A DNA stretch of 64,000 nt from Monocercomonoides exilis PA203 (taxonomy: Eukaryota; Protista; Preaxostyla): contig LSRY02000055.1 in the NCBI GenBank assembly GCA_001643675.2, forward strand, positions 496,001 to 560,000. Reading direction: 5' to 3'. The notes beneath the pieces are model-generated. The model was not told the DNA's origin. It worked only from the letters and a program-made list of their open reading frames with translations, and did not search any database. The translations under genes were made by a program, and so were the position numbers. Below, piece after piece: positions 13,025 through 63,500 of the stretch. Position 1 is the stretch's first letter. The number at the start of each line of letters is the position of its first letter.

Positions 13025-16000
13025 TTATGCAACTTCATCCCTCATAATTTCTTTCATCCGTTTTTTCACCTCTCCCAGCGTGGGCCTTCCCCTCGCATCA
13101 TCCATCCACATCCTCTCCATCACCTCAATCAGCTCCTCTCCCTCAATCCCTTCCGTCAGCGGACGCACCCCATCCCTCATCATCTCCTGCGCTTCCTCTG
13201 CATCACACTCGCTCAACGGCTCTTCCCCTGTTGTCATTTCATGGAGAATCAGTCCAAGTGTGAAAACAACTGCTTTTCCAATTCCCTCATCTCCCACTTC
13301 CTCTTCATCATCTTCATTTTCGCTGTTAAGTTCAGGCGCCTTCCATCGCTTCATTTCTTCCTTCTGCTTTTCATCCTCCAATTCTTCATTCAATAGGTAT
13401 ATTTCATTATTTCCTTCCTCAACAAAGATTGTATGTGGGCACAATTGTTTCCCCATCATTTCCACTCTTTCATCATCAACCGATATCAAATGCTCAAACA
13501 GTTCTGCAACTGCTTTTACCACCTCCTTCCCATCAACAACATCCATTGCTCTTGTTCCCAGTGTGAAATCCCCTTCAACAGAATGAATCATCGAGTATAA
13601 TGTTTTGATGTTCTTTTTCTCTTTCTCTCGAAATGGCTTCTTTGCTGATATCACATTGAGTGAATGAGATTTTGGTGCCCCAGCAGCAGAATCATTCTCG
13701 GAAAATGGCAATGAAGATTCCAAATCTGGAAGATCGTTTTCATTCAGTATTTCATCATTGTTCATTGACGGAGGCTCTGGAAGATCTTCTTCATCGTTGT
13801 CAATGAGAAGCGGAATTTGGCTTGTCATCCCTTCCAGCAATGTCGATGGCATTTCACTCATCTCAAAGCTTCTTCCATTGTTTTCCCTTCTTCTCCTCTC
13901 CATCTTCTGCATTATCTGCTCATTTTCCAAAATTTCTTTCTCAACTTTCTTTTCCACTTCTCTTAGTTTCCTTCGCAAAAGCACAACAACCACAACAAAT
14001 AAACCAACAAAAATTAAAAGAGCAGCAATGCACCCAATAAAGGCAAATAAACTCCATTCAATCCCGCTTTCTCCTTTACAATCTTTGCAGCCTCCTTCTG
14101 AAATTCTATCATCTCCAGTTGAAGGAGACACAGTTTTATTTATCACAACCAATTTATTAGAGGATAATGAATTCCCTTTCCCAAACAGAATGCTCATGCT
14201 CACTTCTGTTTTCTTTCCCATCACTTCCACCTGCTCTGACGTGATAACCGAATGAATTTCGTTTTCTGAAACACACTCATTTTCTTCTATCTTTTGTGTT
14301 TGGATCAGTTCAACGTCCCCGTCTTTCATGCTTATCTTCAGCGACAAGTTGCACGGAAGAAGCAGCTTCCCCCGGATGCTCAAGTCCATGCCCCCACTCG
14401 CCTGTGTTGTGTTCTTCACTTCTTCCAGAACTGGGATGAAAAATGATGATGTTCTTTCACTCGCTATCCCTCCCAATTGACATCCTTCGTCCAAAATCCA
14501 AAGCGATGAGTTATCTTTCAGTCCGTCTCCACCTTTCACACTTGCAACATTCAGCTCGCTGTTCCCTGTGCAGATCACATTCCTTCGCGCTGACGGATAT
14601 CCCTCAACAGATGGATTGTTGTTCTCAAACTTGCTGTTTTCTATCATCAAGCTGCCTCCACTCACCCACAGCCCTCCTTCTTTGCTCTTCATAACTGTTG
14701 TTTCCTTCATCTCCACATTGCTGTTTTCAATGTCAATCAACGAGCCGCTCCATTCGCATAATTTCTCTCCTCTTCCTTGTTCTTCATTCACTGTCTCTGC
14801 TTCTTTCTCCTCTTTTTCTCCATCAAACACACATATCTCAACCTTCACTTCCTTGGATCGCCTTATCTGCATCATGCTTCCCTTCTCCACCGAATTCGCG
14901 CTTTTTTCAAACGAGCAGTTCAGCACACTCACCTCCTGTTCTGCGTCTTCCATCGCAACAACACATCTTTCTGATGCTACACTCACATTCTCTATCCTCA
15001 TGATCTTCATCACCACCTTCGCTTTTCCTCCAACACTCACAACATCTCCCTCACTTTTGATATTTGAAATGCTCGTTTCAAGCAGCGTCACATTCGATTC
15101 TCTGTTGAATAATAATATTGACCCTGTTGAGTGCAAATCTCTAAATGCTGAATCAAATATCCTCAGCTCTCCGCTTTCCACGCTCACAACCGAACTGCTC
15201 AGCTTCATGTCTTCTGCTGTTGCTGATGAGTAGAACTCGCATTTTTGGATCTCCATTGACCCGTTCTTCACTTTCATGATGTAGCTGTGAGAAGCCTCAA
15301 ACGTATCTTCAAACTCGAATGAGCACCTCTCCACAGCGCTTTCATTTATAAACTCCATGATGCAATCCTTCTCTGCCGATTTCTCAATCTTAGATTTCAG
15401 CTTCACAATCGCCTGTGTCTTTTTGTATGAGTTCACATTCAGATCTCCAATCACACATTCCTTTGTCACAGTCCCTTCTCCGTCAATCAGAATCGCATTC
15501 ATCACTCCTTGCTCAATGTGGTCAATCGCTTCGTTGATGCTGCTGCATGGGTTGCCCTGAGCTCCGCATCGTCTGCCATCATCCCCCGACCCATTCAAAA
15601 ACACTTGAAGACCTTTGAAGAATGTGATCAGCGGAATAACATCCATGTCAGTTTTCCCCTCCGAATCACTCCCGCAGATGGAGTTGTTTGTGCCCAATGA
15701 TTCCTGGTTGTAGTTCAGCGAGAACAGTGTTTCGTTGATCTGGTGCCCAATTGAATGGCATTTGATGAATATGTCTTTCCCCACAAATGCGTCGTTCAGC
15801 CTGAACAAGATATTCACAATCTTGAAATTCAGTGATGGAATCTGACTTTCATCATCAATGTTAACATTTCGTGGGTCTGCTCCATCGATATACAGCCCTC
15901 CACCGCGCCCTGATCCCGTCGAGCATCTGCATGTCGAAAACGTGCTCCCATTCACCTTCAAAACCGATTCTTCACTCTTCAGCACCAATTTCATTCCTCC

Positions 16001-19000
16001 TCCTTCTGTGTTCGAATCGCTCCTGCACGTGGACATTGTGCAGTCTTCGATCGTGCATTTCATCGCATAATCAAACGATCCCAATTCAATCGCACTTGCT
16101 CTGCTTCCTTCGTTTATGATGTTTTCAAACGAACAGTACACAACTTTCAACACAGGCTTGTTGCCATTCAAACGAGTGTTTTCATTTCCATTCATCTGGT
16201 TTTCCTCTTCTATCATCGAAATCAGGCTATTTTCTTTCAAAGTCGCTGATGAAATGTTCACATTCTGGATCGTCACCTGGCTCGCAGTTTGGCTGAATGC
16301 AATGAATCCTTTCAATTCGTTGATCTTATTCAAAGTGCAGCTCTGAACTGCTGCGCTCCCTCCGTTCACTTTTATCAGGCAACACTCAAAACTTTCAACA
16401 TTCCCGCCAGCTGACCCAAATGAGCAGTCCGTAACTGACAAGACTGAATTCGTTCCTGATGATTCAATGAATACTGCATGATTGGTGGTTGTGCTGGGTT
16501 TGGTGAACGAGACATTCACAAACGACAGACTCACATTCGATGATATCATTGAATCTTTCAGATCATTCCCATCTTCATCAGATATTGTCACAGCTGTCCC
16601 TTTCTTTGTTCCTTTTATCACAACTGCTGGAGCCTCTGAATCTGGCAAAGTTGGCAACGAAGACAAGAATGATATCGAATGGCTCAGCAACCCTGAATCC
16701 CCAATGCTGATCTGGGATTCGCCTTTTCCAAGTGTCGAATATCTCAGTGATATCAGGTGATTGATCGATGAACACGGTGCTTCAGAAAAGCCACACCCAC
16801 TGAAGTCTCCTCCTTTTTCATTCGATACAAACCCATCTTTGCTCCAGTTCCTCCACAAATACACAACCAATGGAATCACATATCCCTCATCTGTGCTTGC
16901 TCTCTCCCATCCACACAGCTCATCCAATGACTTCTCATCACTTGCACTCAACCCCCATTTCAGTTGTTCGTTTGACATAACATCGTCCAGCTCATTTCCC
17001 GATATGAACACTTTCTTCCCTTTCCAAGCATTGCACCTGCTGAATGTCACTCCTTCCATCTGAAATGATCCCATTGTATCTGCCAATTCAACAAACATCC
17101 CTCCTCCCATTCCTCTTCCTTTCTGCAAGTTGTCCTCTGTTGGCACCTGGCATCCTGTGAATGTTACGCTATTAATCTCCAAACTTCCTCCGTTCTCAGC
17201 TGAAATCATCATCCCTCCTCCTTTCATCCCACCTCCCCCTGTGCATGTTGTTGAAATGCTGCAGTTATCCACAACTGCGCTTCCTCCTTCTTTTATCGCA
17301 GCACTGATGCAACCTCTTCCTTCTACGCTCCCACCTTCCACCGTCACTCCACTCACTCTGCTGTTCTTTATCTCCAGCTTCTCTCCATTGCTTATTGTTA
17401 TTGGTGATTTGCCGTTCATCGTCAGTGTCGTTACACTTTCCATCATCAATCCATCCACAATCAGTTCTCCTCCCGCAACATTCAACACGTTGTATCCTAT
17501 CTTTCCACCCGTAAATGCTCCACTTTCAAATGACACTGAACAGCTCGCCAGACGCAGTGTTGATGATGAATGGATGAGTGCTCTTCTTCTCGAACTCAAC
17601 TGTCCTTTCACAACAAATGAAATACTGCTTATAGTCAGAGAATTCGAACATCCGACAAACCAATCTTGTGTGCTTGATCCTTCTTCAACCACATTCACTT
17701 TCACCCTTGTTATCTCTTCTCCTGCTGTCACTTTCCCCGAAACACTCACATCGAATGAAGGCCCGATGACTTCATCCTTTATTGATGATTCAGAAGAAAC
17801 CTCAACTCTTTGGAAGCCTTTCGGAACTCGAGTGCTCATGCAATAATTGATTGTTTCACACCCAAACTTCTCAAATCCACAGTAGCTGTGATCCAATGCC
17901 CTCTCTCCGCTCCCATCGACAGTCAGCTTCGATTCGATGGTGAACAAATACACAAACAGCGGAATCACTTTCTCTCCGTTCCCATCCTCGCTCCCGCACA
18001 ACTTCAGCACATCTGTTGGTATTTCGCTTGAATCAAAAAACTTAAATGTTGTTGCATCTATTTTTGAGTCCAATAGCACACCACTCCCACAGCTCACAAA
18101 CACGTCTTTCCCATATTTTGCTTTTGTTAAAAAATGAAGATGAAAATTTAACTTCTGATGCAATTTCCAACTTGCTCTTCGTGCTCAGCATCTCCAGCTG
18201 CAATCCTCCCCCTGTCCCTTCATTTGCTTCAAGCTTATTCGCCTCGCATCCATCGATTTTCGTCGATCCATTCACAACAACACTTCCTTCTCCCGTCACA
18301 CTCACACACAACCCTCCTCCTCTTCCTTCTTTTCCGTCTTTTCCATGGCATTTGCAATTTTTAACTGTGCACGTGTCTATTTCAACTCTTCCATTTAGCC
18401 CAGCCCCTCTGTCCACACCAACTGTTCCAACAACCCATCCTCCGTTCCCATATTTCTTTTCCACGCTTGAGACTTTGCATTCTGAAAAGCGCACAAAGTT
18501 CACGCCCCCGACAAATTGAACCAACGAGCTGCTTTCAAACACCAATGTCCGATCAATCAACAATTTTTCCAATATCATATCTCCTCCAATCGCCTTGACA
18601 AAGACATATCCAATTGAGTGATCCCCATCGTCATTCGATGAACAGACAACTGAGCATTCTGAGAGCGTAAGGAGCGTGGAATTTGCTAAAATCAGCGATG
18701 GAGCACCTGACAGAACCGTCGGAATGCTGAAATCGATGCTGCTGATGGAACATTCGCTCTGCACATCAATCAAATATTGAAGTCCAGTAGTTTCTGGATC
18801 AACAACCTTCACACTCTTTTCATTTCCGGTGCAAAAGATCTCCCATTTATAAGCATCACTCATCGACACTACTTCTGCCAGCTCCAATCCTGAATCAAGC
18901 TCGATTTTTTTATTCACACCTGCATATCGCAACTGAGCAGCGTGGGTGATGGTGGCACACGGATAATAAGCAAATCCGCAGAATTGCGAATCATATCCTC

Positions 19001-21914
19001 CCAATTGGTTCTTTGCCTTCCCCACATGTGCAGCAGCCGGAAATGTGTCCAGAAACACATTCAGTGGGAATTTCTTCATATCTTCATCACTCCGATCGAA
19101 TCCCTCCAGCTCGTCGAATGCCGATGTGTTTCGCGGAACATTAAACTTTGAAGAGGAGATGCCCCATTTCACACAATTGCTCCCATTCACAAACAGAAAT
19201 TTCCCCCCCAATGTTGCTGTACAACCTGAAAAGTCAACAGCCATCATCGAGATATCGAAGGCAGAACTTTCCCCGATATTTTCCAGATACAGCATCATCC
19301 CTCCTCCATATTTGTTACACTTGCATCTGTTCAATTTTGTTTCCTCGTTTGCCGCGGCTGTTGAACTCCCCACCCGCAACTTGCTTGAAGATGATTCCAA
19401 CTCGACCTTGATCCCACCACCACTTCCAGTCTTGCACTCGCAATCTTCGATTGTCACATTCTTGACCACAAACGTTTCTCCTGCCTTCACACTCTTTGCC
19501 ACAACCACCCCATCTCCTTCAGTCAACTTCACATTCGTCACCTTCACATTCGCCAGCACGCTGTCTCCTGATGCTGTGGCTGTCAGATACAGTGCAGATG
19601 ACGATAATGACGACAATGAAGAAGAAGAAGAAGAAGGAGAAGATGGATTCGGCTCAGAGAACAATGGTTTTGAGACATTCAAATTTATGATCTCCACATC
19701 AACCATCGACAGCTGTGACAGCGGCACCACAAACACTGACGACGACATCACATAGTTTCCTGAAGAAACACTCGTGGTGATCACAACATCCTCCAATGAG
19801 AGTGACCCACCCCCATCAGACACCACAACCACATTCGGCGAAGAAGGATTTATATTTGAGTTGCAATCAACTTTCATGTGCAATAAACCAAGGTTTCCTG
19901 TCGAAACACTGAACAACGTTCCTACTGCTGATGATGATGAAAGGGCTCCTATTTCGATCGAACTCTTATCTTTGCCTTTCCCAATGACTGAAATCTTCTT
20001 TGTTCCAATCTCAATTGTTGTTGTCTCACTTTTGTGATTCCCTTCCATCAGTGTTATTGTCAAGCTAATCTGTATTTCGCACATCTCAAGCGCCTTCTTC
20101 ACTGTCAGACAAGGATTTGATTCATTTGACCCGCACAGTTCATACAAGTCATTTCCATTCACCGAAACATAAATCGTCTTATCCTTCAACCATTCCTTCT
20201 TTTCTGTGTGCTGAAATGTCCAAGCATTTGCATTCGAGTAGTTGTATGCATAACACACTCTTTGATCATTCGCGTTTGTTGTATAACATTCATAGAACGG
20301 ATTGTCTGAAGTCGAAATGGCATTGTAATAATCAAAATACATCACATCATGCCCATATGGATTGGAGGTTGTTCTGCATTTGCATTCATGGAAGAACAAA
20401 AAATAACAATAAAATTTATCATTTGGCGCTGTTGCTCGATTTGGATACAATTCCAACCCTCCACCATATCCATTTGCTGTACATGAAATAAATTGAATGC
20501 TCCTCATTTTGAACTGACTTGGAACAGTCACACAACGCATGCCTCCACCTCCATTGCTTGTCAATGAGCATGAGGTGAAACTGCAGTCAAACACACACGC
20601 ACTCTCCCCTCCTCCATTTTCTGAACCAATGCAATCAGCTCCTGAAACCTGAAAACTTTCGAGAAGAAGTCCTCCTCCTAAGCCACTAGCTTTGCAATTC
20701 TGGAATTTACATCCGCTGATCCGAGCACATGTTGAAACAGAGCTGACGTACATTCCTCCTCCATATTGATTTTGTGCTGTACACTCATTGAACACATCGT
20801 TTTCGATATGAACAGACTTTATTGTATTGCACATAATTCCACCTCCGCGACTGAATGCAAAACAGTTATTAAACAGACAATTCGAAACAGAGAGCTCTCC
20901 AGAATTGAGATTATACATGAAAATAGCCCCTCCACTTGATATTCCATCAGTATACGAGTCGCTTTCTCCTGTTGTTTTCGATCCACTCCATTCACACCAA
21001 ATAAATGAGTTTGCTCCATTGGTTGTTGTATTCTGTCTTCCTGGAGTTAACTTTCTGACTGATGTTCCTTCACATACAACATTCTTTGTCCGGCAACATC
21101 CGATGAATGAAGTGTTTGAAACAGATAAGGAAGCCAAGGGGTTGTTGAGTGAGGGAACAATCCCTCCATCATATGCGTCGCAAACTGATGAAAAGGAGCA
21201 ACTATTCATCAAACAAGTGGTTTGGGTTAACATTGTGGTTGAAGGTGAACATGCCTCATTTGCTGTTGAGATGTTGAAAAATGTCAGATGGGAGAGGGAT
21301 ACAAGGGGTATTGAAGGGGATGAGAGGAACGGGGCTGATGAGACACAAAAAGAAGAGAAGTGTGATTCACTCACTGAAATACTCCCTTCAATGCCTTCTC
21401 CATATCCATCTCCTTCTCTTCCTCTTCCTCTTCCTCTTCCTCCTTCTCCTTCACCTGCTTTTTCTTCACCTCCACCCTTCTCCCCTCCATATCCCTTCCC
21501 TCCAAACAGCCTTCCCGAGTATATCTCTCCCCCACTTCTCCACCCCTTCAATGTGATGTTCCTCAACACCCCAATGCTCCTGCTCAGATCAAATGCCCCT
21601 GCACCATCATCCTTCCCCATCCCCATAACACATCCTCTCACCACAACCACACTCCCTTTCCTTCCACACACAACATTTCTGCGCTCGTCCTTTATCAGCA
21701 ATATCCTATTCATTGTAATTGATGAATTTTGCATGTGTATGCATCCTCTAATATAACTTTTGCAATTTTTATATTTATAATCTTTTGAAAAAATAAATGA
21801 TCAAAAATTGAAATAACTGTCATCTATCAATCAATATAGGAGCATACTTCGATATTCTGCACTTAGCATACAGGCATATATCAATACGCTAAAATAACAA
21901 ACAGTTGATGACAT
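13025..21914 (-). CDS. Giant type-I membrane receptor-like protein (~2,900 aa): signal peptide, Cys/Gly-rich beta-helix-like ectodomain repeats, one TM helix, C-terminal kinase-like (pseudokinase) domain; one frameshift
   Basis: Predicted exon 1 21914-21848 (MSSTVCYFSVLIYACMLSAEYR) and a 66-nt GTATG...AAG intron 21847-21782 that splices in frame to ORF 18042-21734. Removing one A at 18122-18125 joins it to ORF 13025-18163 (FFN-KAKYGKDVF). Repeated 'GGG..l' and 'CG....PC.TI' modules. TM 'WSLFAFIGCIAALLIFVGLFVVVVVLL' (~13978-14057). Kinase C-lobe motifs RWKAPEL, VFTLGLILHEMTTGEEP and RPT. Confidence 0.85.
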
Positions 21915-33531: not shown

Positions 33532-33732
33532 ATATATCCATAAATTTGATAAAAATAAAAATTTCAGTTTTGGAATATGAAAAGGTTTTATTCGATTGGA
33601 TAATTTTTTAATTGTTAATTCATGAAGTCATCGAAGTTTGTTTCGATTGCTTTTCATAAACGAATTGAGATTTGTTGATGAATCAATATTTTATTTGAAT
33701 TAAATTTTTCATTGTGCAGAATGTGTCTATCT

Positions 33733-34142
33733 AGTATATTCACAGAGAACGAGGCAAAAATATTTCAATGAAAAAAACAAAAAAAAAAACACAGAAAAAA
33801 AGAGCTTTGGAAGGTTTCGAATTCCCGACCTTTGACCAACTGAAAATCAATGGTCGAGGTGGCAAACGCTTGCGCCACTCGATCCAAAGCCCAACCTTAC
33901 TTTCTTATGACTCATCTTAAACATGGCTTAACCCTAACCCAAAAAATCCAAAAAATATCAAGTTTTTTTGAGTGCTAACCCTTAAAAGAAAATTGGGGAC
34001 ATAACCCTAAGCCCAATATCTGTTACGCTAACCCTAAAACCTAAACCAATCTTTAAATACAGTGATTATTTTGGAATTTTAACCCTAAAAATAAAAAAAT
34101 ACTGGGTCTGATCAAATCTACCCCGTTCTCTGTGAATATGCA
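33733..34142 (-). mobile_element. 410-bp TIR element with an 8-bp TSD, carrying TTAGGG motifs and a Pol III-type RNA unit
   Basis: TSD GTCTATCT at 33725-33732 and 34143-34150. TIRs AGTATATTCACAGAGAACG / CGTTCTCTGTGAATATGCA. TAACCC(TAA) motifs at ~33928-34088. Confidence 0.85.
33802..33892 (-). ncRNA. Putative ~91-nt Pol III (tRNA-derived or vault-RNA-like) structured RNA
   Basis: 10-bp closing stem GGGCTTTGGA/TCCAAAGCTC. A-box-like TGGCGCAAGCG and B-box-like GAATTCGAAACC. Internal hairpins TCGAGTGGC/GCCACCTCGA and GACCA/TGGTC. Followed immediately by an oligo-T run. Not a canonical cloverleaf. Confidence 0.55.
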
Positions 34143-34239
34143 GTCTATCTTTTAAATTTTTTTAAAGATTTACAAGTTTGCATCGAATTCACATCACCTT
34201 TCGAAAAAACTTTTCAATTTTGGGCAGTTAAACAGACAT

Positions 34240-35030
34240 ATTTGAGGAGAAGAGATTCTTCAGATGAATGTTGTGAAATACCACAGAGAGAAGATAATTA
34301 TGTATTCTACGAATGAAAACGCAACAGATAGCAAGCGATGTGGTGAATTCATTTTGCATTGTCAATAATTGAATCAAGAAGTATTTCATATAATTCGTTT
34401 ATCTTATTCTCAGCTGTTCGTATAAGGAAACAGACATGAAAGGTAAATAAGAAGCAATAAATGAAATTATTCGTTCATTGCAATCTCAATCAGCTTTATT
34501 TGTGCATCTGAACTCAACAGTTACTGATGCGAAAAGTTTTATCGCAACTTTAGGATATGTTCAGATTGAGAGATTGAAATTCAACTTTTAGCAATTCTTT
34601 TCATATTCTGGAAGTTCAATTATTCATGAAGCAAGTGGCCAGCTTTCTCTTTCATTTGTTGATTTTTCATCTGTTGGCCAATCAGAAAACATTGAAGCTG
34701 TTGTTCTGAATTCAACATTGTAAAACATTGAAAAATGAATTCTTCATGTTGATAACTGCTCGGTGTCTCTCCTTTCATTCCAGAAGCCTTCTTTTCTGTT
34801 AAATGGAGATGAGATTAATATCATAAATATGAAGTTTAAACACATTGAATCAATGGCAAATGTGTTTAATATTACTGACTGCAAAGAAGTTGTATTCAAT
34901 GGAATATCTGCAGATGGAGTGAAATTGTCTGAAGGTTGCATCATTCAGATTGGCGGCTCAACTTCGGGAACAATTTCTATTGAAATCTCCCCATTCAACA
35001 ACTGCTAAATGAATACAAAAGGAGCCTCTT
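34240..35030 (+). pseudogene. Decayed ectodomain fragment of the surface-receptor family
   Basis: 'NATDSKRCGE...C' module and beta-helix-like ORF 34763-35008, with stops. Confidence 0.6.
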
Positions 35031-35499
35031 CTATTTTTGCTTCTCCCCCTCCCTCTTTTTAACCTTCGCATTTTTCAACTTCTTCAACTTCTTTTCGCAC
35101 TCTTTGTTCAGAAATATGAAAAAAGATAAATGTTGTATTCTCAGTGTTAACAACATATTTGTTTTTTTCAAAAGGTTTTTGAAAGGAAATGAATGCAACG
35201 AGAAACAAAAGAAAGATGATGAAGAAAATGAAGAAGATGAAGAAGATGAAGAAGATGAAGAAGATGAAGAAAGGAATTAAAAGAAAACGTCAATGATGAA
35301 AATGTCATCTGGAAAATCTGAGTGTCGATAACATCCACTGCATACTCAAAGAACAGCAGCTTGTGTTGTTGCCATCGCTTTCTAACTCGGAGACTTCTCG
35401 TGCTGTAATGAATAAGTTAAAGAAGAAGATAATAATGAAGCATGACAAGGCATTCACTCCTCCTCCCTTCTTGTGCCATGCTTTTGAGTCTTGAAACAA

Positions 35500-37900
35500 A
35501 ACCACTCACTGTTAGTCTCACAGCAGCTGCCCAAAGCAGATCGTCACTTTTTCATTGTTCTTTCCCAGCTGTAGCCCCACCATCCTGAACATCACCCTCT
35601 GCACTTCTTTCTTCACCACCGTCAACTGCATAGACTCCACTGAAATCAATCACACTCGGCCGTCTAGCACTATCTTCAGCAGCTTTAGATGCCGGCTCGC
35701 AGTCTTCACAATTTCGCTGTTCTCCGATTGTGAAAGAGGCTCTCATCGAAAAGCAGCATCACACACATCTGGATGCATGAGGCACAGTATGAAGAAGTCT
35801 TTGCTCTAAAACGCCTCCAGCACCTACGCAAGCAACTGCAGACAACAACCAGATAGTATGTACGCACCCCGGAAGATCCGCAACGACAGCGCCTGTGGCG
35901 TCTGCGGGGGGCACACACAAAAGAGATTCCATCTCTGAATTTGTGATGCACCTGATATTGTAGACGAAGACAAATACGAAGACGAAGAAATCAAGGTCTC
36001 GCTAGAACATATGGCATCGTACAGCGCCATTATCGCCTTCTTTATTCATCTTTTTTTTATGCCCAGTAATTATTCAGCAGAATCTCCAGAAACACATACG
36101 CATCGATCTCTCCCTTCTCCGGCTGCAGCCCCTCAAACTTCCCAAAAAACATCTATATCTTCTTCTCAGACGCCCCTTCAAGCACCGTGTTGAAAAACAA
36201 GAAGAACTATAGCTTGTCTTTATTGAACTTCCCTGGCACACACTTCCAAACAGCCGCACATCTGCAAAGTCCTTCCGAAACAGCTCCACTCCGTACACCA
36301 TCACCCACCGCGCCGCCTCGCTCTTCTTCTGCACCGCGTGCTTCAACTCCAGCCACATGCACACAAAGTCCCCAAACCCCTGCCCACCCGACACTGCCTA
36401 CGCCCAGTTCTGCTGTGATATTGTCAACTCACATCTCCAAATTCGTCGACAGCGTTCACACCAGAGACAGCTTCAGCCCCGTCTTCAGCAGGATCAGCAT
36501 CCACTCCACCGGCATAGACGACCGTCGCGTGGGCGGCATCCGAAACATACGCACCGTTTCGTAAGCTGCCTGCCCCTGCGACTCAGAGACCGTTCTTATC
36601 AGCGATTCCATCACCTTAAACACAACCGGTGAAGACGCAGCATCATCAAAAGATGAGCCTGACTCAGATCCACCTGACGAACACACAAGCCACTCCGACT
36701 CTTCCTTGTCTCTGCTGTCTGTTGTCTGTTGTCTGCTCAAGAAGCATATTCAGACGCTGGCTGCAGTCGCTCACCCACCCCTGCCCCTTCTACTGTCACA
36801 GGCACACGGTCCTCCCGCTCTCTCTTGGGATCATTGTGCAGCAACAGTCAAATACCATACAACTCCTCTTATCTCTTTCTTCTGCCTTTTCACGCTCCTC
36901 CGCTTCCTCTCATTCTCAGCCTCCGCTTCTATTCCTCCTCCTTTTCATCCTCGCCCCATCCCTCTCACTTTCCCATTTCTCCTGTGCTCCTCCTTTTCTG
37001 ACCCCACCAATCTACCCCCGCAGCATCTTCTCTTTCAGCTTCTTCGCCTTTTCAGTCAGCTGCTCTTCTGCCTCTTCATGTTTCGCCTTCATTTTCTTCT
37101 GCTCCCACTTCTATTGAACAGCGCATTCTGCATGTGTATCGTCTTTTCCTGCACTTTCGACAGCACCATTCTTTTCGTATCTTTCGTTGATCCCAGATCT
37201 CGCTCCCTCACTTCCACCTCAGCCGAAACTCTTTCCACCCACCGTTGTCTTCTTCCAACAACACTCATCCTACTCCCAACTTTCACTTCAGCCACCTTCA
37301 CACACACGTTTGGTTATATCTTAGCAACGCGGCAATTTTTGACGATTGCTTCAAGCTTCACATGATTCTTTTAACACAGCTCATAAGGCAGAATCAACAA
37401 AGAAGAAAACGGAATCATCCCTCTTTCCGCTGAGGCCAATGAAGAAGGCGTAGCAAGCGTAATAATTAATTCATCAGTTTCCGCTTGTCATCCACACTCA
37501 CCACTCCACTCTGCTGCTTCTGTTGCTTCTTAACGTTCTCAGTCCCCACATCAATCAGCTCTGCCTTCTCCTTCATGGCCACCAGCTGCTCATGCAGATC
37601 CTTAACTTTCTTCACCTCTGCAATGTTCTTCTCACTCATCTGCAGAATCTTCCTCTAATTCATCCTTTGATCTTGTCCTTCTCCTGCAGCTGCTCCGTCA
37701 GTTCACTCGCAGGCTTCGATATCCGCTCTTCGTATCGGATCTTCTGCAGCAGCATGACGAACTTCACAAACTTCTTCTCCACCACCTGCTTCGCCTTCTC
37801 ATGTTTTTCCTTTATATTTTACTCCTTCTTCTTCTTCCTCTTTTGGTACCTCCTCATTTTCACATTCTTCTCCTTTCTCTTCTTCTCCATTTAATTCTTC
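35500..37900 (-). pseudogene. Decayed GC-richer host gene(s), partly coiled-coil
   Basis: Protein-like fragments 36456-36740 and 37089-37307 with many stops. Confidence 0.35.
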
Positions 37901-40508
37901 TTCTTCTTCTTCTAATTTAACTTATTCTTTCACTTCTCATTCTTCCTCTTCTTCTTCTTCCTCCTCCTCCTCCTCCTCTTCTTCTTCTTCTTCTTCTCTT
38001 TCTCCTTCTTCAAATTCTTCTTCTTCTTATTCGAATTTATATTCTTCTCATCCTTTTGCAACCATTTCATTAGTTTACACATCATCTTTATCTTCTTCTT
38101 CTTCTTCTCTCCCTTCTTCTTCACATTCTTCTTCTTTATCATCTTCTTCTTTTCATAATTTCAACATATCACACAGCTTTTTTTCCATCTTTCTTTTCGT
38201 CTCCTACTTTGTATTGACATTTGATTTCTTTGTTTGAACTTCTTCTTTTTCTTCTCCTCCTTCTTCTTTTGTCAATTTGACATGTTTCATGTCATTTTGA
38301 TTTGACATGTCTGTTTTCAACTGAGTTGCGGAATTATCTCCGGAAAATATTGAACGTCCCCGAACGGGGGAATTTATTTTTGGTGATTTTTTTATTTTTG
38401 AATTATTTGAAGAAGAAGGAGGAGGAGGAGGAGGAAGAGAAAGAAATGAGTATGAAAAGAATCAAATGAAGAAGAAGAAGAAAAAGAGGAAGAATAAGAG
38501 GAAGATGTGTTTGAGGAAGAAGAATGAATGAAATTAGAGGAAGAGGAAGAGAAGGACTGGTTTGTTGGTAGATGGAAGAGATGAAGAGAGAGAGCGAATA
38601 AAAAGTAGAAGGTGAAAAAGGGATGAATGTAATGGCATGTTCTGCGTCTGATGGAGCACAGATTCATTCTAATTTGCACAGACAAGCAAATAGAGATGAT
38701 AATTGTATTTGAAGAAGTTTGAATATTCTTCCCGCTGGAAAATTGTGATTGAGGAGGGTTCTATTTCTTGTTGTATGCTTGCCAACGTGTGGGACCTTCT
38801 TCTGATGTTTGCGATGGATTTTTTCCGTTTCTGCATTAGCGGCTAAGCCGGTAACTTCTTCGGTATTCCATTGGGTGCGGTATCTTCTGCAAGGTGACAT
38901 CGAAAGGGAGATTGGAAACTCCCAATTTCGTCCTTTTTCGTTAAACTGCTTCACATGCACCTGTGCTCCCTTCTTCTGATTCTGTGCATTTGACATCTGC
39001 TTGGCCTCTTGCATCTCAAAGTTCTGAACATAACTTTGCCTTTCCTCTTCGCGCCAGGTGGAAGGAGAACATGAATAACTTCTTGGTTGTCTTTCGCAAG
39101 TCCAAGAGCTTCTTTTCATTCAGAAGTTTCTCACTTTTCCCCGCTAAAACAAGAAGTTTTGACATCTGTTTTCTTTCTCATCAGAGGCGCATTCCGAAAA
39201 TGATAATGATATTTTTTTCAACTGTAATTAATGAAACGTCGAAGCGGGCGAAAGTGTCTTTCTCAGATTTGTATTTTTCATCTATAAAATACCATTCAAA
39301 TAATTTGTCATCTTTGGAAAATGTTGTATGTTTTGTGAGTTCATATCCAATTTAAACGTTCAGACTGCATTTATGCATTTCTTCCGTTCAATAATTCACA
39401 ATTGGTATGAAAGCTCCATTATGAAAAAATTGCTTTTGTAACATTTTCTATATATGTTCAATAAGATTCAGTTAAAAATCTATCCGATTTTGCTCTTTCA
39501 GAACAAATGTTAATTGCCTGTTGACGAAACTTCCAAACTCTAAAAAACGGGATTTCTCAGCACTATTGCACTTCTCATCTGATAGAATTATTCGGTTGTA
39601 ATGATTAATATCCTTTTTCTGCATTTTTCCAATGTTAGTGAATCTGAGTTCCCACTTTGGAGAATTGAAAAATTAACCAATATAATTTGAGAAATGTTGG
39701 AATTAAGTGGATCGACTTGCTTTCGAGAAAATATCATCAAAGGAGCTGGAAAATGTTCAAATGCAAAATTTTCTTTGTCCAACTGCAAAATTGAACAATT
39801 ATTTTTTAAAAAAAAATAACATATAAACCTTAAACCTTCATTTATCCTCTTTGTCAATACTCTGATCTCATTACAAATTGGAATTTACATCAAGGAGGAA
39901 TTGAGTATCATTTGAACAGATTTGACAATAAAATGAATGAAAACGATAAAAACTGATATTCGCATAATCATGATTTTTCAACAAGTATATTTAAGATAAT
40001 ACTTATCGAGCAACAACTTTGCTTTGTATCAAGTTTGTTTAAACGCGATTAATGCAATTTCATGAAAAAAACATTTTTAAATTAATCAAAAAACAACATT
40101 CTAAATATTAATGAATGTTATAATGGGGCAAAGCTGTAAAAAAAATTGAATGCACCATTTAATGGTATTGAGATTTAACATATTATTTGAATTAAGCCTC
40201 TGCGACAGATTGACATTTTTTAAACAACTCGACAAGTCGACCGACACAATAAATTCCTCTCTTTAATTCATTTTTCATTTATTTTCTTTTTTCATTGCCA
40301 ATCAAAATTATAGATTAAAAAATATTGAACTGTTTTTTTTATTAAATCAATTAAAAAAATTTATGAATTATGAAAATCTTAAAAATTTTTTCACAAAATT
40401 TTTATTTATTTAAAATTCAAATTTAATAGTGGGCTATTGACAGATCTTTGTCGAGATCAGTCGAGTTGTTGAAAACAGAAAAAATGACTGTTTATGTTTG
40501 ATTATTTC

Positions 40509-40910
40509 GGAAAGATTGCTCATATGCGGACCCTTTTGATCATAGAACCATAATAATATTTATAGGGTTTAAATAAATTCTTTTACTGTCTTTTGTAGTT
40601 GTTTTAGGGTTAGGGTTATCACAAAATTCTTCTTTAAAAAGTTGTTATAGGCAGTAGGGTTGTGTCTCAAATCTTCTTTTTAGGGTTTTGATGTGAAAAG
40701 TGATGTTTTTAATTGACCAAACTTTTTGGGTTAGGGATATAGATAAAAGAATACGTGAAAAAAGAACATTTTGGGGTGCAGAAATAGCACAACAGGTTAG
40801 GATGTTAGGACAGCACGAGAAGGATGCGGGTTTGATTCCTCCCGCATTCTTCATTTTTTTTTTGCAAAAATAATTAAAAATTGAAAGGTCCGCATAAGTG
40901 CATTCTTGCC
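40509..40910 (+). mobile_element. 402-bp Merlin-like MITE (GG...CC ends, 8-bp TSD) with TTAGGG motifs and a Pol III-type unit, nested in element B
   Basis: TSD ATTATTTC at 40501-40508 and 40911-40918. 24-bp TIRs GGAAAGATTGCTCATATGCGGACC / GGTCCGCATAAGTGCATTCTTGCC (4 mismatches). Confidence 0.85.
40773..40863 (+). ncRNA. Putative Pol III-type small RNA unit (tRNA-derived)
   Basis: A-box-like TAGCACAACAGG (40785), B-box-like GGTTTGATTCC (40829), 12-bp hairpin GAAGGATGCGGG/CCCGCATTCTTC, then T10. Confidence 0.5.
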
Positions 40911-42299
40911 ATTATTTCTCGCTTTCTAATTGGGAGATATGTTTAAACTTCAATGTCAAATTTTTTGTTCATATTTGATTCTTTCTTGTTTTGATCTCTT
41001 GTTATGAGGTAATGCAAAAAAGGAAAAAACTTCGTTTCAAATTTACATTTTTCAAACTGCTATTTTTGTTCATCACTTTGAAGAGGAAATGGTGTTTAGT
41101 GTTTTTCAAACAATCCTCGTTTATTTTATTTTGTTTCAAATACTTTGAACAAATAAAATAACGTTGTTTCAATCAAAACATAATACTGTCGTGACAATGG
41201 AGAAAAATGATGAAGTTTTTGTGTGAAAACTTTCATTATAACAAATTGAAGGAAAAATCTTAAGTTCCAATAAAAGGATTTTTAAAAAAAAGTTATATGA
41301 ATCCTTTTCGAGAACATAAAACATTGAAATTGATAAGCAAAAAAAAGTGAATGATAAAAGTTCCTTCAATTTCGAAATGTGCAGAGTGCGAAGCATCGAT
41401 CGAACGAACTTTATTTGTGAGCTGCGATGAACATTTGGAAACTGCAACTGTGACGAAGGAGCATATAAAGTTGAATGCAAAACAAAAGATGATTGGGGAA
41501 ATGAAGATTGTGGAAGAAATAATGCAGTCCGAAGGTGGAAGGAATACTTCATTGACATGAAAGAAACAGTTTGACAGAAAAGAAAAGCAAAAGAGGGGAA
41601 GAAGGAAAATATTTCATAAAATAGGGAAGAAAGGTGCGAATTTAAATGGAAACGAATGATTAGCGAATGACAGAAGATCGTTGCATATTAATGCCTGCCG
41701 GGAGGAGTAATTTTGGATAAGCCTATTGAAATTTGAACAGTTGTGCCTCTTCAAATTGTACCTTTGACATCTTAGCGAGATGAAAAACACACAATGGTGT
41801 AAGTGTGATGCAAAGAATATGAGATTGGGTTGATTTCTCTGATGCATATGTGACATATCATGATGAAAGGTTTGTGTTGGTTGAACACAGCTTCTCTCTG
41901 TAGCTTCGCAGGTAGCTTTATCTGTGAAAAGATGAATGCTGAATCTTTTTTAACATGGGCATCCAGATAGTGCTTGTTAGCCTCTTTTTTCACAGCAACC
42001 TTGTTCCTATCGCATCGCATGTGTTCATCCTCTTCTCATTCTTTCCATTCTGTTTCTTCTCAGTCTTTGGTGTCTTATGGATCAGCATTCGAATCACTTT
42101 TTCATCTCCAATCTGTTGCTGTGCGTGGAGTGTGCCATGCGAATCGCTATCTTGTTCGACTTGAGCTTCTGTATTCAAGTCAACTTCTTTCTCTTTTCAA
42201 TTGAGACAGATGTATTCATCTTTGTTCTTTCTATATTGCAAAGAAAGTATTTTGAAAAAGTGAATGAAAATTGTTATTAATAGGAGATAAAGAAAACAA

Positions 42300-57566: not shown

Positions 57567-60500
57567 ATGAATCCTTTCAAAAGAAAACATAACGGAATTG
57601 GAAACAAGAGCATCAAACGGGATGTGAAAAATCTAGAAAATATTTTTGGAAAAATGTCAGAGAACCATGCAGAACTTGTTCTCTTATCATTTTTACAATC
57701 TACGAAGCAAGGAAAAAAACTTTTGGAAACATTGTCCAAATCAAAAGCATGTTTGTATTTGTTTTAATATTAAATACAAAATTACTAATATTTAAACATC
57801 ATTTTTCAAATAAACTTGAATTATTTTATTTTCTATAGCTATTCCAAAAAAACATTACAATGAAATAGATATTAACTCAGATTCAGAAAGCACTGAATCA
57901 TTATCATCAGATTTAAGTCCAATTGCTTCTGTGCCTGCAACTTCGAATAATTCTGAATTATTATCATCAGATTTAAGTCCAATTGCTTCTGTGCCTGCAA
58001 CTTCGAATAATTCTGAATTATTATCATCAGATTTAAGTCCAATTGCTTCTGTGCCTGCAACTTCGAATAATTCTGAATTATTATCATCAGATTTAAGTCC
58101 AATTGCTTCTGTGCCTGCAACTTCGAATAATTCTGAATTATTATCATCAGATTTAAGTCCAATTGCTTCTGTGCCTGCAACTTCGAATAATTCTGAATTA
58201 TTATCATCAGATTTAAGTCCAATTGCTTCTGTGCCTGCAACTTCGAATAATTCTGAATTATTATCATCAGATTTAAGTCCAATTGCTTCTGTGCCTGCAA
58301 CTTCGAATAATTCTGAATTATTATCATCAGATTTAAGTCCAATTGCTTCTGTGCCTGCAACTTCGAATAATTCTGAATTATTATCATCAGATTTAAGTCC
58401 AATTGCTTCTGTGCCTGCAACTTCGAATAATTCTGAATTATTATCATCAGATTTAAGTCCAATTGCTTCTGTGCCTGCAACTTCGAATAATTCTGAATTA
58501 TTATCATCAGATTTAAGTCCAATTGCTTCTGTGCCTGCAACTTCGAATAATTCTGAATTATTATCATCAGATTTAAGTCCAATTGCTTCTGTGCCTGCAA
58601 CTTCGAATAATTCTGAATTATTATCATCAGATTTAAGTCCAATTGCTTCTGTGCCTGCAACTTCGAATAATTCTGAATTATTATCATCAGATTTAAGTCC
58701 AATTGCTTCTGTGCCTGCAACTTCGAATAATTCTGAATTATTATCATCAGATTTAAGTCCAATTGCTTCTGTGCCTGCAACTTCGAATAATTCTGAATTA
58801 TTATCATCAGATTTAAGTCCAATTGCTTCTGTGCCTGCAACTTCGAATAATTCTGAATTATTATCATCAGATTTAAGTCCAATTGCTTCTGTGCCTGCAA
58901 CTTCGAATAATTCTGAATTATTATCATCAGATTTAAGTCCAATTGCTTCTGTGCCTGCAACTTCGAATAATTCTGAATTATTATCATCAGATTTAAGTCC
59001 AATTGCTTCTGTGCCTGCAACTTCGAATAATTCTGAATTATTATCATCAGATTTAAGTCCAATTGCTTCTGTGCCTGCAACTTCGAATAATTCTGAATTA
59101 TTATCATCAGATTTAAGTCCAATTGCTTCTGTGCCTGCAACTTCGAATAATTCTGAATTATTATCATCAGATTTAAGTCCAATTGCTTCTGTGCCTGCAA
59201 CTTCGAATAATTCTGAATTATTATCATCAGATTTAAGTCCAATTGCTTCTGTGCCTGCAACTTCGAATAATTCTGAATTATTATCATCAGATTTAAGTCC
59301 AATTGCTTCTGTGCCTGCAACTTCGAATAATTCTGAATTATTATCATCAGATTTAAGTCCAATTGCTTCTGTGCCTGCAACTTCGAATAATTCTGAATTA
59401 TTATCATCAGATTTAAGTCCAATTGCTTCTGTGCCTGCAACTTCGAATAATTCTGAATTATTATCATCAGATTTAAGTCCAATTGCTTCTGTGCCTGCAA
59501 CTTCGAATAATTCTGAATTATTATCATCAGATTTAAGTCCAATTGCTTCTGTGCCTGCAACTTCGAATAATTCTGAATTATTATCATCAGATTTAAGTCC
59601 AATTGCTTCTGTGCCTGCAACTTCGAATAATTCTGAATTATTATCATCAGATTTAAGTCCAATTGCTTCTGTGCCTGCAACTTCGAATAATTCTGAATTA
59701 TTATCATCAGATTTAAGTCCAATTGCTTCTGTGCCTGCAACTTCGAATAATTCTGAATTATTATCATCAGATTTAAGTCCAATTGCTTCTGTGCCTGCAA
59801 CTTCGAATAATTCTGAATTATTATCATCAGATTTAAGTCCAATTGCTTCTGTGCCTGCAACTTCGAATAATTCTGAATTATTATCATCAGATTTAAGTCC
59901 AATTGCTTCTGTGCCTGCAACTTCGAATAATTCTGAATTATTATCATCAGATTTAAGTCCAATTGCTTCTGTGCCTGCAACTTCGAATAATTCTGAATTA
60001 TTATCATCAGATTTAAGTCCAATTGCTTCTGTGCCTGCAACTTCGAATAATTCTGAATTATTATCATCAGATTTAAGTCCAATTGCTTCTGTGCCTGCAA
60101 CTTCGAATAATTCTGAATTATTATCATCAGATTTAAGTCCAATTGCTTCTGTGCCTGCAACTTCGAATAATTCTGAATTATTATCATCAGATTTAAGTCC
60201 AATTGCTTCTGTGCCTGCAACTTCGAATAATTCTGAATTATTATCATCAGATTTAAGTCCAATTGCTTCTGTGCCTGCAACTTCGAATAATTCTGAATTA
60301 TTATCATCAGATTTAAGTCCAATTGCTTCTGTGCCTGCAACTTCGAATAATTCTGAATTATTATCATCAGATTTAAGTCCAATTGCTTCTGTGCCTGCAA
60401 CTTCGAATAATTCTGAATTATTATCATCAGATTTAAGTCCAATTGCTTCTGTGCCTGCAACTTCGAATAATTCTGAATTATTATCATCAGATTTAAGTCC

Positions 60501-63500
60501 AATTGCTTCTGTGCCTGCAACTTCGAATAATTCTGAATTATTATCATCAGATTTAAGTCCAATTGCTTCTGTGCCTGCAACTTCGAATAATTCTGAATTA
60601 TTATCATCAGATTTAAGTCCAATTGCTTCTGTGCCTGCAACTTCGAATAATTCTGAATTATTATCATCAGATTTAAGTCCAATTGCTTCTGTGCCTGCAA
60701 CTTCGAATAATTCTGAATTATTATCATCAGATTTAAGTCCAATTGCTTCTGTGCCTGCAACTTCGAATAATTCTGAATTATTATCATCAGATTTAAGTCC
60801 AATTGCTTCTGTGCCTGCAACTTCGAATAATTCTGAATTATTATCATCAGATTTAAGTCCAATTGCTTCTGTGCCTGCAACTTCGAATAATTCTGAATTA
60901 TTATCATCAGATTTAAGTCCAATTGCTTCTGTGCCTGCAACTTCGAATAATTCTGAATTATTATCATCAGATTTAAGTCCAATTGCTTCTGTGCCTGCAA
61001 CTTCGAATAATTCTGAATTATTATCATCAGATTTAAGTCCAATTGCTTCTGTGCCTGCAACTTCGAATAATTCTGAATTATTATCATCAGATTTAAGTCC
61101 AATTGCTTCTGTGCCTGCAACTTCGAATAATTCTGAATTATTATCATCAGATTTAAGTCCAATTGCTTCTGTGCCTGCAACTTCGAATAATTCTGAATTA
61201 TTATCATCAGATTTAAGTCCAATTGCTTCTGTGCCTGCAACTTCGAATAATTCTGAATTATTATCATCAGATTTAAGTCCAATTGCTTCTGTGCCTGCAA
61301 CTTCGAATAATTCTGAATTATTATCATCAGATTTAAGTCCAATTGCTTCTGTGCCTGCAACTTCGAATAATTCTGAATTATTATCATCAGATTTAAGTCC
61401 AATTGCTTCTGTGCCTGCAACTTCGAATAATTCTGAATTATTATCATCAGATTTAAGTCCAATTGCTTCTGTGCCTGCAACTTCGAATAATTCTGAATTA
61501 TTATCATCAGATTTAAGTCCAATTGCTTCTGTGCCTGCAACTTCGAATAATTCTGAATTATTATCATCAGATTTAAGTCCAATTGCTTCTGTGCCTGCAA
61601 CTTCGAATAATTCTGAATTATTATCATCAGATTTAAGTCCAATTGCTTCTGTGCCTGCAACTTCGAATAATTCTGAATTATTATCATCAGATTTAAGTCC
61701 AATTGCTTCTGTGCCTGCAACTTCGAATAATTCTGAATTATTATCATCAGATTTAAGTCCAATTGCTTCTGTGCCTGCAACTTCGAATAATTCTGAATTA
61801 TTATCATCAGATTTAAGTCCAATTGCTTCTGTGCCTGCAACTTCGAATAATTCTGAATTATTATCATCAGATTTAAGTCCAATTGCTTCTGTGCCTGCAA
61901 CTTCGAATAATTCTGAATTATTATCATCAGATTTAAGTCCAATTGCTTCTGTGCCTGCAACTTCGAATAATTCTGAATTATTATCATCAGATTTAAGTCC
62001 AATTGCTTCTGTGCCTGCAACTTCGAATAATTCTGAATTATTATCATCAGATTTAAGTCCAATTGCTTCTGTGCCTGCAACTTCGAATAATTCTGAATTA
62101 TTATCATCAGATTTAAGTCCAATTGCTTCTGTGCCTGCAACTTCGAATAATTCTGAATTATTATCATCAGATTTAAGTCCAATTGCTTCTGTGCCTGCAA
62201 CTTCGAATAATTCTGAATTATTATCATCAGATTTAAGTCCAATTGCTTCTGTGCCTGCAACTTCGAATAATTCTGAATTATTATCATCAGATTTAAGTCC
62301 AATTGCTTCTGTGCCTGCAACTTCGAATAATTCTGAATTATTATCATCAGATTTAAGTCCAATTGCTTCTGTGCCTGCAACTTCGAATAATTCTGAATTA
62401 TTATCATCAGATTTAAGTCCAATTGCTTCTGTGCCTGCAACTTCGAATAATTCTGAATTATTATCATCAGATTTAAGTCCAATTGCTTCTGTGCCTGCAA
62501 CTTCGAATAATTCTGAATTATTATCATCAGATTTAAGTCCAATTGCTTCTGTGCCTGCAACTTCGAATAATTCTGAATTATTATCATCAGATTTAAGTCC
62601 AATTGCTTCTGTGCCTGCAACTTCGAATAATTCTGAATTATTATCATCAGATTTAAGTCCAATTGCTTCTGTGCCTGCAACTTCGAATAATTCTGAATTA
62701 TTATCATCAGATTTAAGTCCAATTGCTTCTGTGCCTGCAACTTCGAATAATTCTGAATTATTATCATCAGATTTAAGTCCAATTGCTTCTGTGCCTGCAA
62801 CTTCGAATAATTCTGAATTATTATCATCAGATTTAAGTCCAATTGCTTCTGTGCCTGCAACTTCGAATAATTCTGAATTATTATCATCAGATTTAAGTCC
62901 AATTGCTTCTGTGCCTGCAACTTCGAATAATTCTGAATTATTATCATCAGATTTAAGTCCAATTGCTTCTGTGCCTGCAACTTCGAATAATTCTGAATTA
63001 TTATCATCAGATTTAAGTCCAATTGCTTCTGTGCCTGCAACTTCGAATAATTCTGAATTATTATCATCAGATTTAAGTCCAATTGCTTCTGTGCCTGCAA
63101 CTTCGAATAATTCTGAATTATTATCATCAGATTTAAGTCCAATTGCTTCTGTGCCTGCAACTTCGAATAATTCTGAATTATTATCATCAGATTTAAGTCC
63201 AATTGCTTCTGTGCCTGCAACTTCGAATAATTCTGAATTATTATCATCAGATTTAAGTCCAATTGCTTCTGTGCCTGCAACTTCGAATAATTCTGAATTA
63301 TTATCATCAGATTTAAGTCCAATTGCTTCTGTGCCTGCAACTTCGAATAATTCTGAATTATTATCATCAGATTTAAGTCCAATTGCTTCTGTGCCTGCAA
63401 CTTCGAATAATTCTGAATTATTATCATCAGATTTAAGTCCAATTGCTTCTGTGCCTGCAACTTCGAATAATTCTGAATTATTATCATCAGATTTAAGTCC

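Follow-up and report, generated by a model that had tools for sequence, protein, structure and literature searches.

The stretch of Monocercomonoides exilis PA203 DNA analysed here (contig LSRY02000055.1, positions 496,001 to 560,000; hereafter the window, 64,000 nt in full, with a G+C content of about 35%) carries two short elements, A and B (Table 1), which are non-autonomous cut-and-paste transposons of the Merlin (IS1595) type, i.e. MITEs (miniature inverted-repeat transposable elements). In both, a filler with TTAGGG-type telomere boxes is followed by a unit that has the sequence hallmarks of an RNA polymerase III (Pol III) gene. This unit is a native 3′ module of the full-size, transposase-encoding Merlin elements of the same genome, it derives in one family from a recognizable tRNA gene, and it may be occupied by the Pol III machinery in the cell. 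The original prediction had suggested that the MITEs may spread a small non-coding RNA gene; the MITEs did not acquire such a gene themselves, given that the unit is already present in the autonomous elements and that the filler is the part specific to the MITEs.

Each of the two elements was correctly predicted to have a perfect 8-bp target site duplication (TSD) and terminal inverted repeats (TIRs) of its own. The TIR arms of element A (33736-33754 / 34121-34139) are 19 nt long and 95% complementary, and those of element B are 27 nt long and 81% complementary. The window copy of element A deviates from the GG...CC termini of its family in that the outermost base is mutated on both sides. The subterminal motif found inward of the TIR in element A is common to all the families described below and to the autonomous element. 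The one-strand arrangement of TTAGGG-type motifs beside the unit was likewise recovered, with 4–6 TAGGG boxes per element on the strand of the unit. All nine TAGGGTT motifs of the window lie inside elements A (four, minus strand) and B (five, plus strand), compared with 2.85 expected, and nine or more were reached in 0 of 100 shuffles. The telomere repeat of M. exilis is TTAGGG, and 153 tRNA genes have been predicted in this species (PMC6759080). Strong stems were also present in both units, the folding z-scores being −2.9 for element A and −3.8 for element B; in the latter the A and B boxes are 44 nt apart.

Table 1. Features of the two Merlin MITEs in the window (positions are those of the window)
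Feature	Position	Strand	Remarks
Element A: family-A Merlin MITE, 410 bp	33733-34142	-	about 10% divergence from family; both terminal bases mutated
Element A: TSD GTCTATCT, 8 bp	left 33725-33732, right 34143-34150	none	
Element A: TIR, telomere-box end	34121-34142	-	inward of TIR: subterminal motif TTGATCAGACCCA
Element A: telomere-box filler	33929-34090	-	4 TAGGGTT plus degenerate boxes, all minus strand
Element A: tRNA-derived Pol III-type unit, 91 nt	33802-33892	-	terminal stem GGGCTTTGG...CCAAAGCTC closes unit
Element A: A box	33866-33877	-	
Element A: B box	33813-33823	-	degenerate in window copy: AATTCGAAACC
Element A: T7 run, candidate Pol III terminator	33795-33801	-	immediately after unit
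Element A: TIR, unit end	33733-33754	-	
Element B: family-B Merlin MITE, 402 bp	40509-40910	+	GG...CC termini
Element B: TSD ATTATTTC, 8 bp	left 40501-40508, right 40911-40918	none	
Element B: left TIR	40509-40535	+	
Element B: telomere-box filler	40561-40742	+	5 TAGGGTT plus GGGTTAGGGA, all plus strand
Element B: Pol III-type unit	~40773-40852	+	
Element B: A box TAGCACAACAGG	40785-40796	+	
Element B: B box GGTTTGATTCC	40829-40839	+	in loop of 12-bp hairpin
Element B: T10 run, candidate Pol III terminator	40854-40863	+	
Element B: right TIR	40884-40910	+	

Searches of the genome (82.3 Mb in 101 contigs) returned at least nine full-length relatives of element A, at 85–90% identity, and at least seven of element B, and a search with the TIR patterns found 38 family-A ends (about 20 elements) and 18 family-B ends (about 10 elements), with no ends in the reversed-pattern control. 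Four further families, C to F, were found among the matches. Family C (L018-L022; 394 bp) has at least seven elements; family D (L028-L030) has TIRs of about 120 nt and part of the telomere-box filler, and lacks the Pol III-type unit; family E (L048, L049) comprises at least four MITEs together with four longer elements; and family F is represented by L046 and L047. All families from A to F have GG...CC as their consensus termini, and nearly all of the full copies inspected in families A, B, C, E and F have an 8-bp TSD of their own, a few being imperfect or unclear. Because they are multi-copy, with copy-specific 8-bp TSDs, elements A and B are real transposons. The predicted assignment to Merlin/IS1595 is also upheld: the TSDs are 8 bp long, the termini are GG, and an autonomous element shares the TIRs and encodes a DDE_Tnp_IS1595 transposase. 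Merlin elements have been reported in Monocercomonoides sp. PA203, with more than 100 copies in at least seven families and 8-bp TSDs (PMC8101967).

The autonomous family-A element (C10:32740-34247, corresponding to positions 187-1694 of L017) was located by a Merlin transposase profile match inside a 1.5-kb family-A TIR pair. It is 1,508 bp long, has family-A TIRs and the TSD TAACATAA, and contains an intact, intronless open reading frame (ORF) of 355 amino acids that matches DDE_Tnp_IS1595 (PF12762; 1.6e-23) and, weakly, the IS1595 zinc ribbon. The family-A TIR with the TTGATCTGACCCA motif comes first, followed after 63 nt by the transposase ORF and then by a spacer of about 215 nt; next are the same 33 nt as are found before the unit in the MITE, and lastly unit, T-run and right TIR. 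There are no telomere boxes. A second A-type copy (C21, L027) has kept the C-terminal region of the transposase at 85% identity. In family E, two 1,482-bp elements (C1:757433-758914 and C43:87591-89072) were defined from the coordinates of their TIRs, B boxes and transposase matches, and the B box of the unit lies downstream of the DDE domain and on the same strand, at a distance of 556 bp in both elements compared with 555 bp in family A. A 1,371-bp TIR pair of family C (C37:392227-393597) is a candidate autonomous element, defined by coordinates only. Autonomous DDE_Tnp_IS1595 elements with the TIRs of the MITEs, for which the original prediction had advised a search, thus do exist for family A and, as judged by coordinates, for family E; for family B, only TIR pairs of MITE size were found. 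Since the autonomous element carries the unit and lacks the telomere boxes, the MITE corresponds to a transposon whose ORF was replaced by a filler of about 170 bp. Furthermore, the presence of the unit in the autonomous elements of both families A and E means that it is a native module of the Merlin lineage, older than the split between these families.

The predicted A box, B box and T-run could be confirmed at the sequence level in each unit-bearing family, with tRNA-like spacing. The A-box matches are TAGCGCAAGCGG in family A, TAGCACAACAGG in B, TAGCCGATCGG in C and TGGTCTAGTGG in E, and the B box has the form GGTTCGAnnCC (GGTTCAATTCC in family E). The two boxes are separated by 44–45 nt in families B, E and F and by 53–54 nt in A and C. 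All unit-bearing families also have a T-run, five residues or longer, within a few bases of the last stem. The combination of B box and T-run gave 395 matches, compared with 17 in a reversed-pattern control. The family-E unit can be aligned with the tRNA-Pro(TGG) of the genome over positions 6–72 (z = 9.2; 0 of 300 shuffles match), and the units of families B and F are homologous to that of family E, so the units are decayed tRNA derivatives that have kept the boxes and the terminator. When the other units were compared with tRNA, z-scores of 3–4 were obtained for families A, B and F and of 2.3 for family C, the similarity coming mostly from the B box. Support for a conserved RNA fold is weak: in family A the unit folds into a terminal stem and two or three hairpins, with double changes at only 4 of the 28 pairs (covariation term +0.41), and in families B, E and F the only shared fold is the B-box hairpin (RNAalifold covariation term −0.02). 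The possibility that the unit is a bona fide tRNA was rejected, as it fails both the Rfam tRNA model, for which no unit gave a match at the gathering score or at E-values up to 10, and ARAGORN, which at default settings found no tRNA among the units; the 'tRNA-???' matches that ARAGORN gave only at thresholds of 70–80% were not counted.

A set of 27 non-redundant tRNA genes (L075-L114) was seen to share a weak upstream motif, made up of an A-run (positions −21 to −17), T-rich sequence and the string CAASAA (−6 to −1). The position-weight matrix of this motif, built from the 27 real tRNA genes, scored 11.4 in family F (background p ~1e-4) and weakly in the window copy of family B (p 0.007), and found no clear match in families A, C and E. 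A strong match being confined to family F, the tRNA upstream motif was rejected as general evidence for the unit.

According to the original prediction, the two elements would share an architecture rather than a sequence. This has to be revised, for the filler of family A is 82% identical to those of families C and D, with a weak match to that of B, and in a nine-sequence alignment of full elements all but the outer TIRs could be aligned; the filler is homologous between families, so it is the sequence that is conserved and not the layout alone. The blocks common across families are the subterminal TTGATCYGACCCA motif, five to six telomere boxes, a AATAAAAGAA block, the unit and the T-run, and the positions of the telomere boxes are fixed and common to all six families. 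Pairwise identities across families average 0.73 both in the TAGGG columns and in the subterminal motif, and 0.68 in the B box, compared with 0.44 elsewhere, although the aligner may have anchored on these motifs and so inflated the difference; for the boxes, the permutation p of this between-family conservation is 0.0004. The ends of the families do not align with one another, and the right end of the MITE is only about 84% identical to that of its own parent. Given that the filler is 82% similar while the ends do not align, the filler must have moved between families, possibly when gap repair switched templates at the shared subterminal motif. As the autonomous elements do without them, the telomere boxes are not needed for mobility; their motif-specific conservation among the MITE families suggests that the boxes may help the success of the MITEs.

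Other transposons provide a hint as to what may be bound at the unit. Element H (3.2 kb, with a DDE_Tnp_4, i.e. PIF/Harbinger, ORF) splits the family-A copies in C19 and C43 just upstream of the unit (the H copy in C19 is L050:707-3897, with the DDE_Tnp_4 ORF at L050:2852-3262 on the minus strand). A 1-kb H derivative is inserted in the family-A copy of C13, and the copies in C21 and C91 contain other H-type elements with AGAAC...GTTCT ends. In all four copies where the unit-side junction was read (C19, C43, C13 and C21), the insert ends 5–9 nt before GGGCTTTGG; for C91, it is the upstream junction only that was read, and it matches. In C19 and C43, the copies with the H subterminal motif, the same end of H faces the unit. 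Other H copies were traced through this motif, and the same H end was found about 9 nt upstream of tRNA-Phe (L060) and tRNA-Pro (L069). In a sample of 40 high-scoring tRNA genes, H-type ends lie 5–7 nt upstream of the gene at three independent loci, the terminus of a repeat named X lies 5–7 nt upstream at two, and a repeat named Y lies about 8 nt upstream at two. X or a relative apparently interrupts the family-A unit as well, close to its 5′ end, in L013 and L012, as read from one half of each copy. Altogether, of seven independent breaks in family-A elements, at least five are concentrated in about 30 bp out of 405, corresponding to a binomial probability of ~4e-5 by our own arithmetic and on a conservative count of the breaks. 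The simplest reading is that H and X recognize in the unit what they recognize at tRNA genes. By analogy with Ty3 and TRE5-A (PMC6101501), the recognized feature could be the TFIIIB/TFIIIC complex, and as H inserts 5–9 nt upstream of the unit in the same way as at tRNA genes, Pol III factors probably occupy the family-A unit.

Several insertions and neighbourhoods of repeats deserve mention in their own right. H-type elements were seen near tRNA genes in L060, L069, L094, L101 and L110. X (L091, L112, L013, L057, L059 and L072), which is unclassified, has a doubled GGGGAGnnAACCCGnnC motif followed by AGTGATCA and also abuts Harbinger-like ends, and Y (L087/L088 and L100) ends in ...GGGAATTATTCCCGGGTATTTGACACGCTA at two independent tRNA loci. 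One family-D copy adjoins tRNA-Gln. A Merlin element in C61 (L060:258-1396), whose transposase is 38% identical to that of family A and whose TIR starts with GGCAAAATGAAAG, is nested in a Harbinger-like element adjoining tRNA-Phe. The family-B copies L055 (C26) and L056 (C80) contain unrelated elements, of 468 bp and 2,934 bp, with 9-bp TSDs and the identical 9-bp target CTCGAATCT, about 100 nt upstream of the unit; with a third break (L043) only 7 nt off, this constitutes a second insertion hot spot. Two family-A copies, L010 (C6:321045-321341) and C39:199765-199871, are broken near the same internal position (A coordinates 293-303), and the break in L010 adjoins a 50-nt poly(A) run that may be a retroelement tail.

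Building on the observed anatomy, autonomous partner, homology between families and tRNA descent of the family-E unit, we favour with moderate confidence an overall reading in which a Merlin lineage with a tRNA-derived unit has given rise to filler-bearing MITEs, the unit being a Pol III-occupied module that serves the transposon. Full-size members of the lineage measure only about 1.5 kb: a first TIR and some 60 nt lead to an intronless transposase gene, after which another 215 nt or so lead to a degenerate tRNA-derived gene with A box, B box and T-run, and then to the second TIR. In this reading, a MITE would form when the transposase ORF is replaced by a filler of about 170 bp with five to six TTAGGG boxes in one orientation, the filler being passed between MITE families with different TIRs. 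The module would benefit the transposon and not the host, as a compact boundary or roadblock bound by Pol III or TFIIIC on the 3′ side of the transposase gene, a boundary that would keep the ends of the element accessible and insulated; the telomere boxes of the MITEs would add binding sites for a Myb-type TTAGGG protein, and individual copies, including both of those in the window, would be left to decay neutrally. That the unit is occupied by TFIIIC/TFIIIB in the cell seems somewhat more probable than that it is vacant, judging from the distance and orientation of the tRNA-homing transposons, and the specific benefit of the module as a boundary or roadblock would have to be rated much lower. 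Tentatively, and with rather more against it than for it, one could go further and suppose that the lineage has carried its own Pol III gene, a degenerate tRNA, throughout its diversification, exploiting the TFIIIC/Pol III complex of the host as a built-in chromatin boundary or RNA polymerase II roadblock, and that in the MITEs an array of telomere-protein sites has joined it, the two together making a mobile module with two factors by which the element stays accessible and its neighbours are shielded. More remotely still, the interstitial TTAGGG arrays spread by the MITEs might seed new telomeres, in a genome of 40–50 small chromosomes.

A number of observations weigh against this reading. 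Both window copies have a mutated B box relative to the family consensus, with GG changed to AA in element A and the C of TTCGA changed to T in element B. Within families, the fraction of positions differing from the consensus is 0.083 in the A box and 0.121 in the B box, compared with 0.065 in the rest, for family A, and 0.135 and 0.045, compared with 0.082, for family B. The negative Rfam and ARAGORN results belong here as well, as do the RNAalifold covariation terms of about zero. As regards the parents, the two family-E elements are known by coordinates only, the TIR pattern search for an autonomous partner with family-B TIRs returned only MITE-size pairs, and only a minority of the Merlin transposase matches have a strict B box and T-run downstream. 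As regards homing, insertions of this kind were seen in family A only, the H-bearing copies in C19, C43 and C13 may descend from one insertion, and H might have been drawn to the same site of a repeated sequence time and again by a preference for that sequence; in family B, the breaks were made by other elements and cluster about 100 nt upstream of the unit.

Among the alternatives, the one that fares best, unlikely as we consider it, is that the unit is a neutral relic, that is, that an ancestral Merlin captured a tRNA gene which was then kept because it overlaps subterminal sequence needed by the transposase, with neither Pol III binding nor transcription. In its favour, the unit matches no tRNA model and shows no convincing covariation, its copies decay neutrally, and it lies within about 200 nt of an end, where transposase-binding sites are common. 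However, in five to six families whose unit sequences can no longer be aligned, A box, B box, spacing and T-run have all been kept, and transposons that target tRNA genes insert at the 5′ edge of the unit, at the same distance and in the same orientation.

The contrast between and within families also bears on whether the host is the beneficiary. Between families, the unit has diverged except for its boxes, the spacing of these and the terminator, which persist. This persistence, set against the decay within families, points to selection on the source elements, i.e. for the transposon. A portable insulator, anti-silencing element or small-RNA gene that is useful to the host and retained at individual sites of insertion is improbable in comparison. 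In yeasts, tRNA genes, TFIIIC sites and sites for the TTAGGG-binding protein Tbf1 act as chromatin barriers, which makes such a role conceivable, and the conserved position of the boxes between families would be in keeping with it. But an insulator or anti-silencing cassette of this kind, as suggested in the original prediction, is not supported. Within families A and B, the two Pol III boxes deviate from the consensus as often as the remaining sequence, which at the level of individual copies is the very outcome that the prediction itself had named as counting against it; this decay, together with the B-box mutations of both window copies, argues against an insulator selected by the host. Moreover, copies are interrupted by other transposons, and the autonomous elements lack telomere boxes altogether.

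A role in cis on the transposase mRNA is more improbable again. The 3′ end of MALAT1 is made by RNase P and RNase Z cutting of a tRNA-like fold (mascRNA), and a comparable cut could form the 3′ end of the transposase mRNA, the Pol III boxes being incidental; the unit is on the transposase strand, about 215 nt downstream of the ORF, with identical spacing in two families. Against such processing, the cloverleaf has not been retained, MITEs that lack the ORF keep the unit, and the T-run right after the unit is a Pol III feature. Finally, an independent short interspersed element (SINE) that landed inside a MITE, and that would be missing from most copies as the original prediction had allowed, could explain the tRNA-derived head with A and B boxes but was rejected as hardly conceivable, since the elements have TIRs and an 8-bp TSD of fixed length and lack any poly(A) or LINE-type (long interspersed element) tail, the unit has no TSD of its own, and it occupies the same place in all full copies examined, in all families except D and also in the autonomous element.

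The preferred reading, a transposon-serving Pol III module, can be compared with several known systems. The elements described here resemble the Merlin families of Monocercomonoides sp. PA203 (PMC8101967) in their 8-bp TSDs, 5′-GG termini, TIRs of 22–29 bp and DDE_Tnp_IS1595 transposase, as well as in the occurrence of many families with differing TIRs in the species. Unlike in that account, the transposase gene of the autonomous elements is here followed on its 3′ side by a Pol III-type unit of tRNA descent, and there are MITEs that have, in addition, a shared telomere-box filler; a term search of PMC8101967 showed that neither 'MITE' nor 'tRNA' occurs in it. tRNA-derived SINEs are alike in having a degenerate tRNA-derived head, internal A and B boxes, a T-run and many copies, but their mobility depends on LINE-mediated retrotransposition, their TSDs are variable and a 3′ tail is present, whereas the elements here have TIRs, fixed 8-bp TSDs and the unit at the 3′ end. 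Pack-MULEs and other transduplicating DNA transposons also carry host-derived sequence between TIRs; their cargo, however, consists of protein-gene fragments captured copy by copy, and here a derivative of a Pol III gene has been kept through the lineage, including its autonomous members. The tDNA/TFIIIC boundaries and Tbf1 subtelomeric anti-silencing regions of yeast are similar in the combination of B box and TTAGGG, but the copies here are not conserved individually and are known from their sequence alone. As for homing, H and the other repeats within about 10 nt of tRNA gene starts recall Ty3, TRE5-A (PMC6101501) and Dada (PMC3706591; insertion into small-RNA genes), except that H is a cut-and-paste element of the PIF/Harbinger type that inserts upstream of the gene, being neither a retrotransposon nor a sequence-specific element inserting inside the gene like Dada.

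Nothing relevant turned up when the literature was searched for DNA transposons or MITEs that carry Pol III units, which, the coverage being incomplete, is weak evidence of novelty; a tRNA-like unit inherited from a full-size DNA transposon may thus be undescribed for a DNA transposon lineage. What is new here are the unit-bearing autonomous parents, the tRNA-Pro descent of the family-E unit, the MITE-specific filler exchanged between families, and the contrast between conservation within and between families. Pol III-promoter modules are a hallmark of SINEs, i.e. of retrotransposition; in the present case, a lineage of DNA transposons has conserved one as part of its make-up, the compact autonomous members included. 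Should Pol III factors really bind to it, nature would offer an example of a transposon that carries a TFIIIC site to its own advantage, and the copies could serve as an in vivo reporter for what DNA transposons homing to tRNA gene starts recognize, the units being tRNA-like in promoter and not in sequence. The MITEs would then also supply the gene-dense genome of this protist with scattered TFIIIC and TTAGGG sites.

Two minor observations concern the genome at large and the rest of the window. Copies L005/L006 and L035/L036 and several pairs of tRNA genes (e.g. L094/L095) are identical, together with their flanks, and lie in inverted orientation a few kb apart, which points to local inverted segmental duplications. 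In the window, the regions 36000-38000, 14000-20000 and 57872-64000 show a strong GC skew (to −0.46) and very long ORFs.

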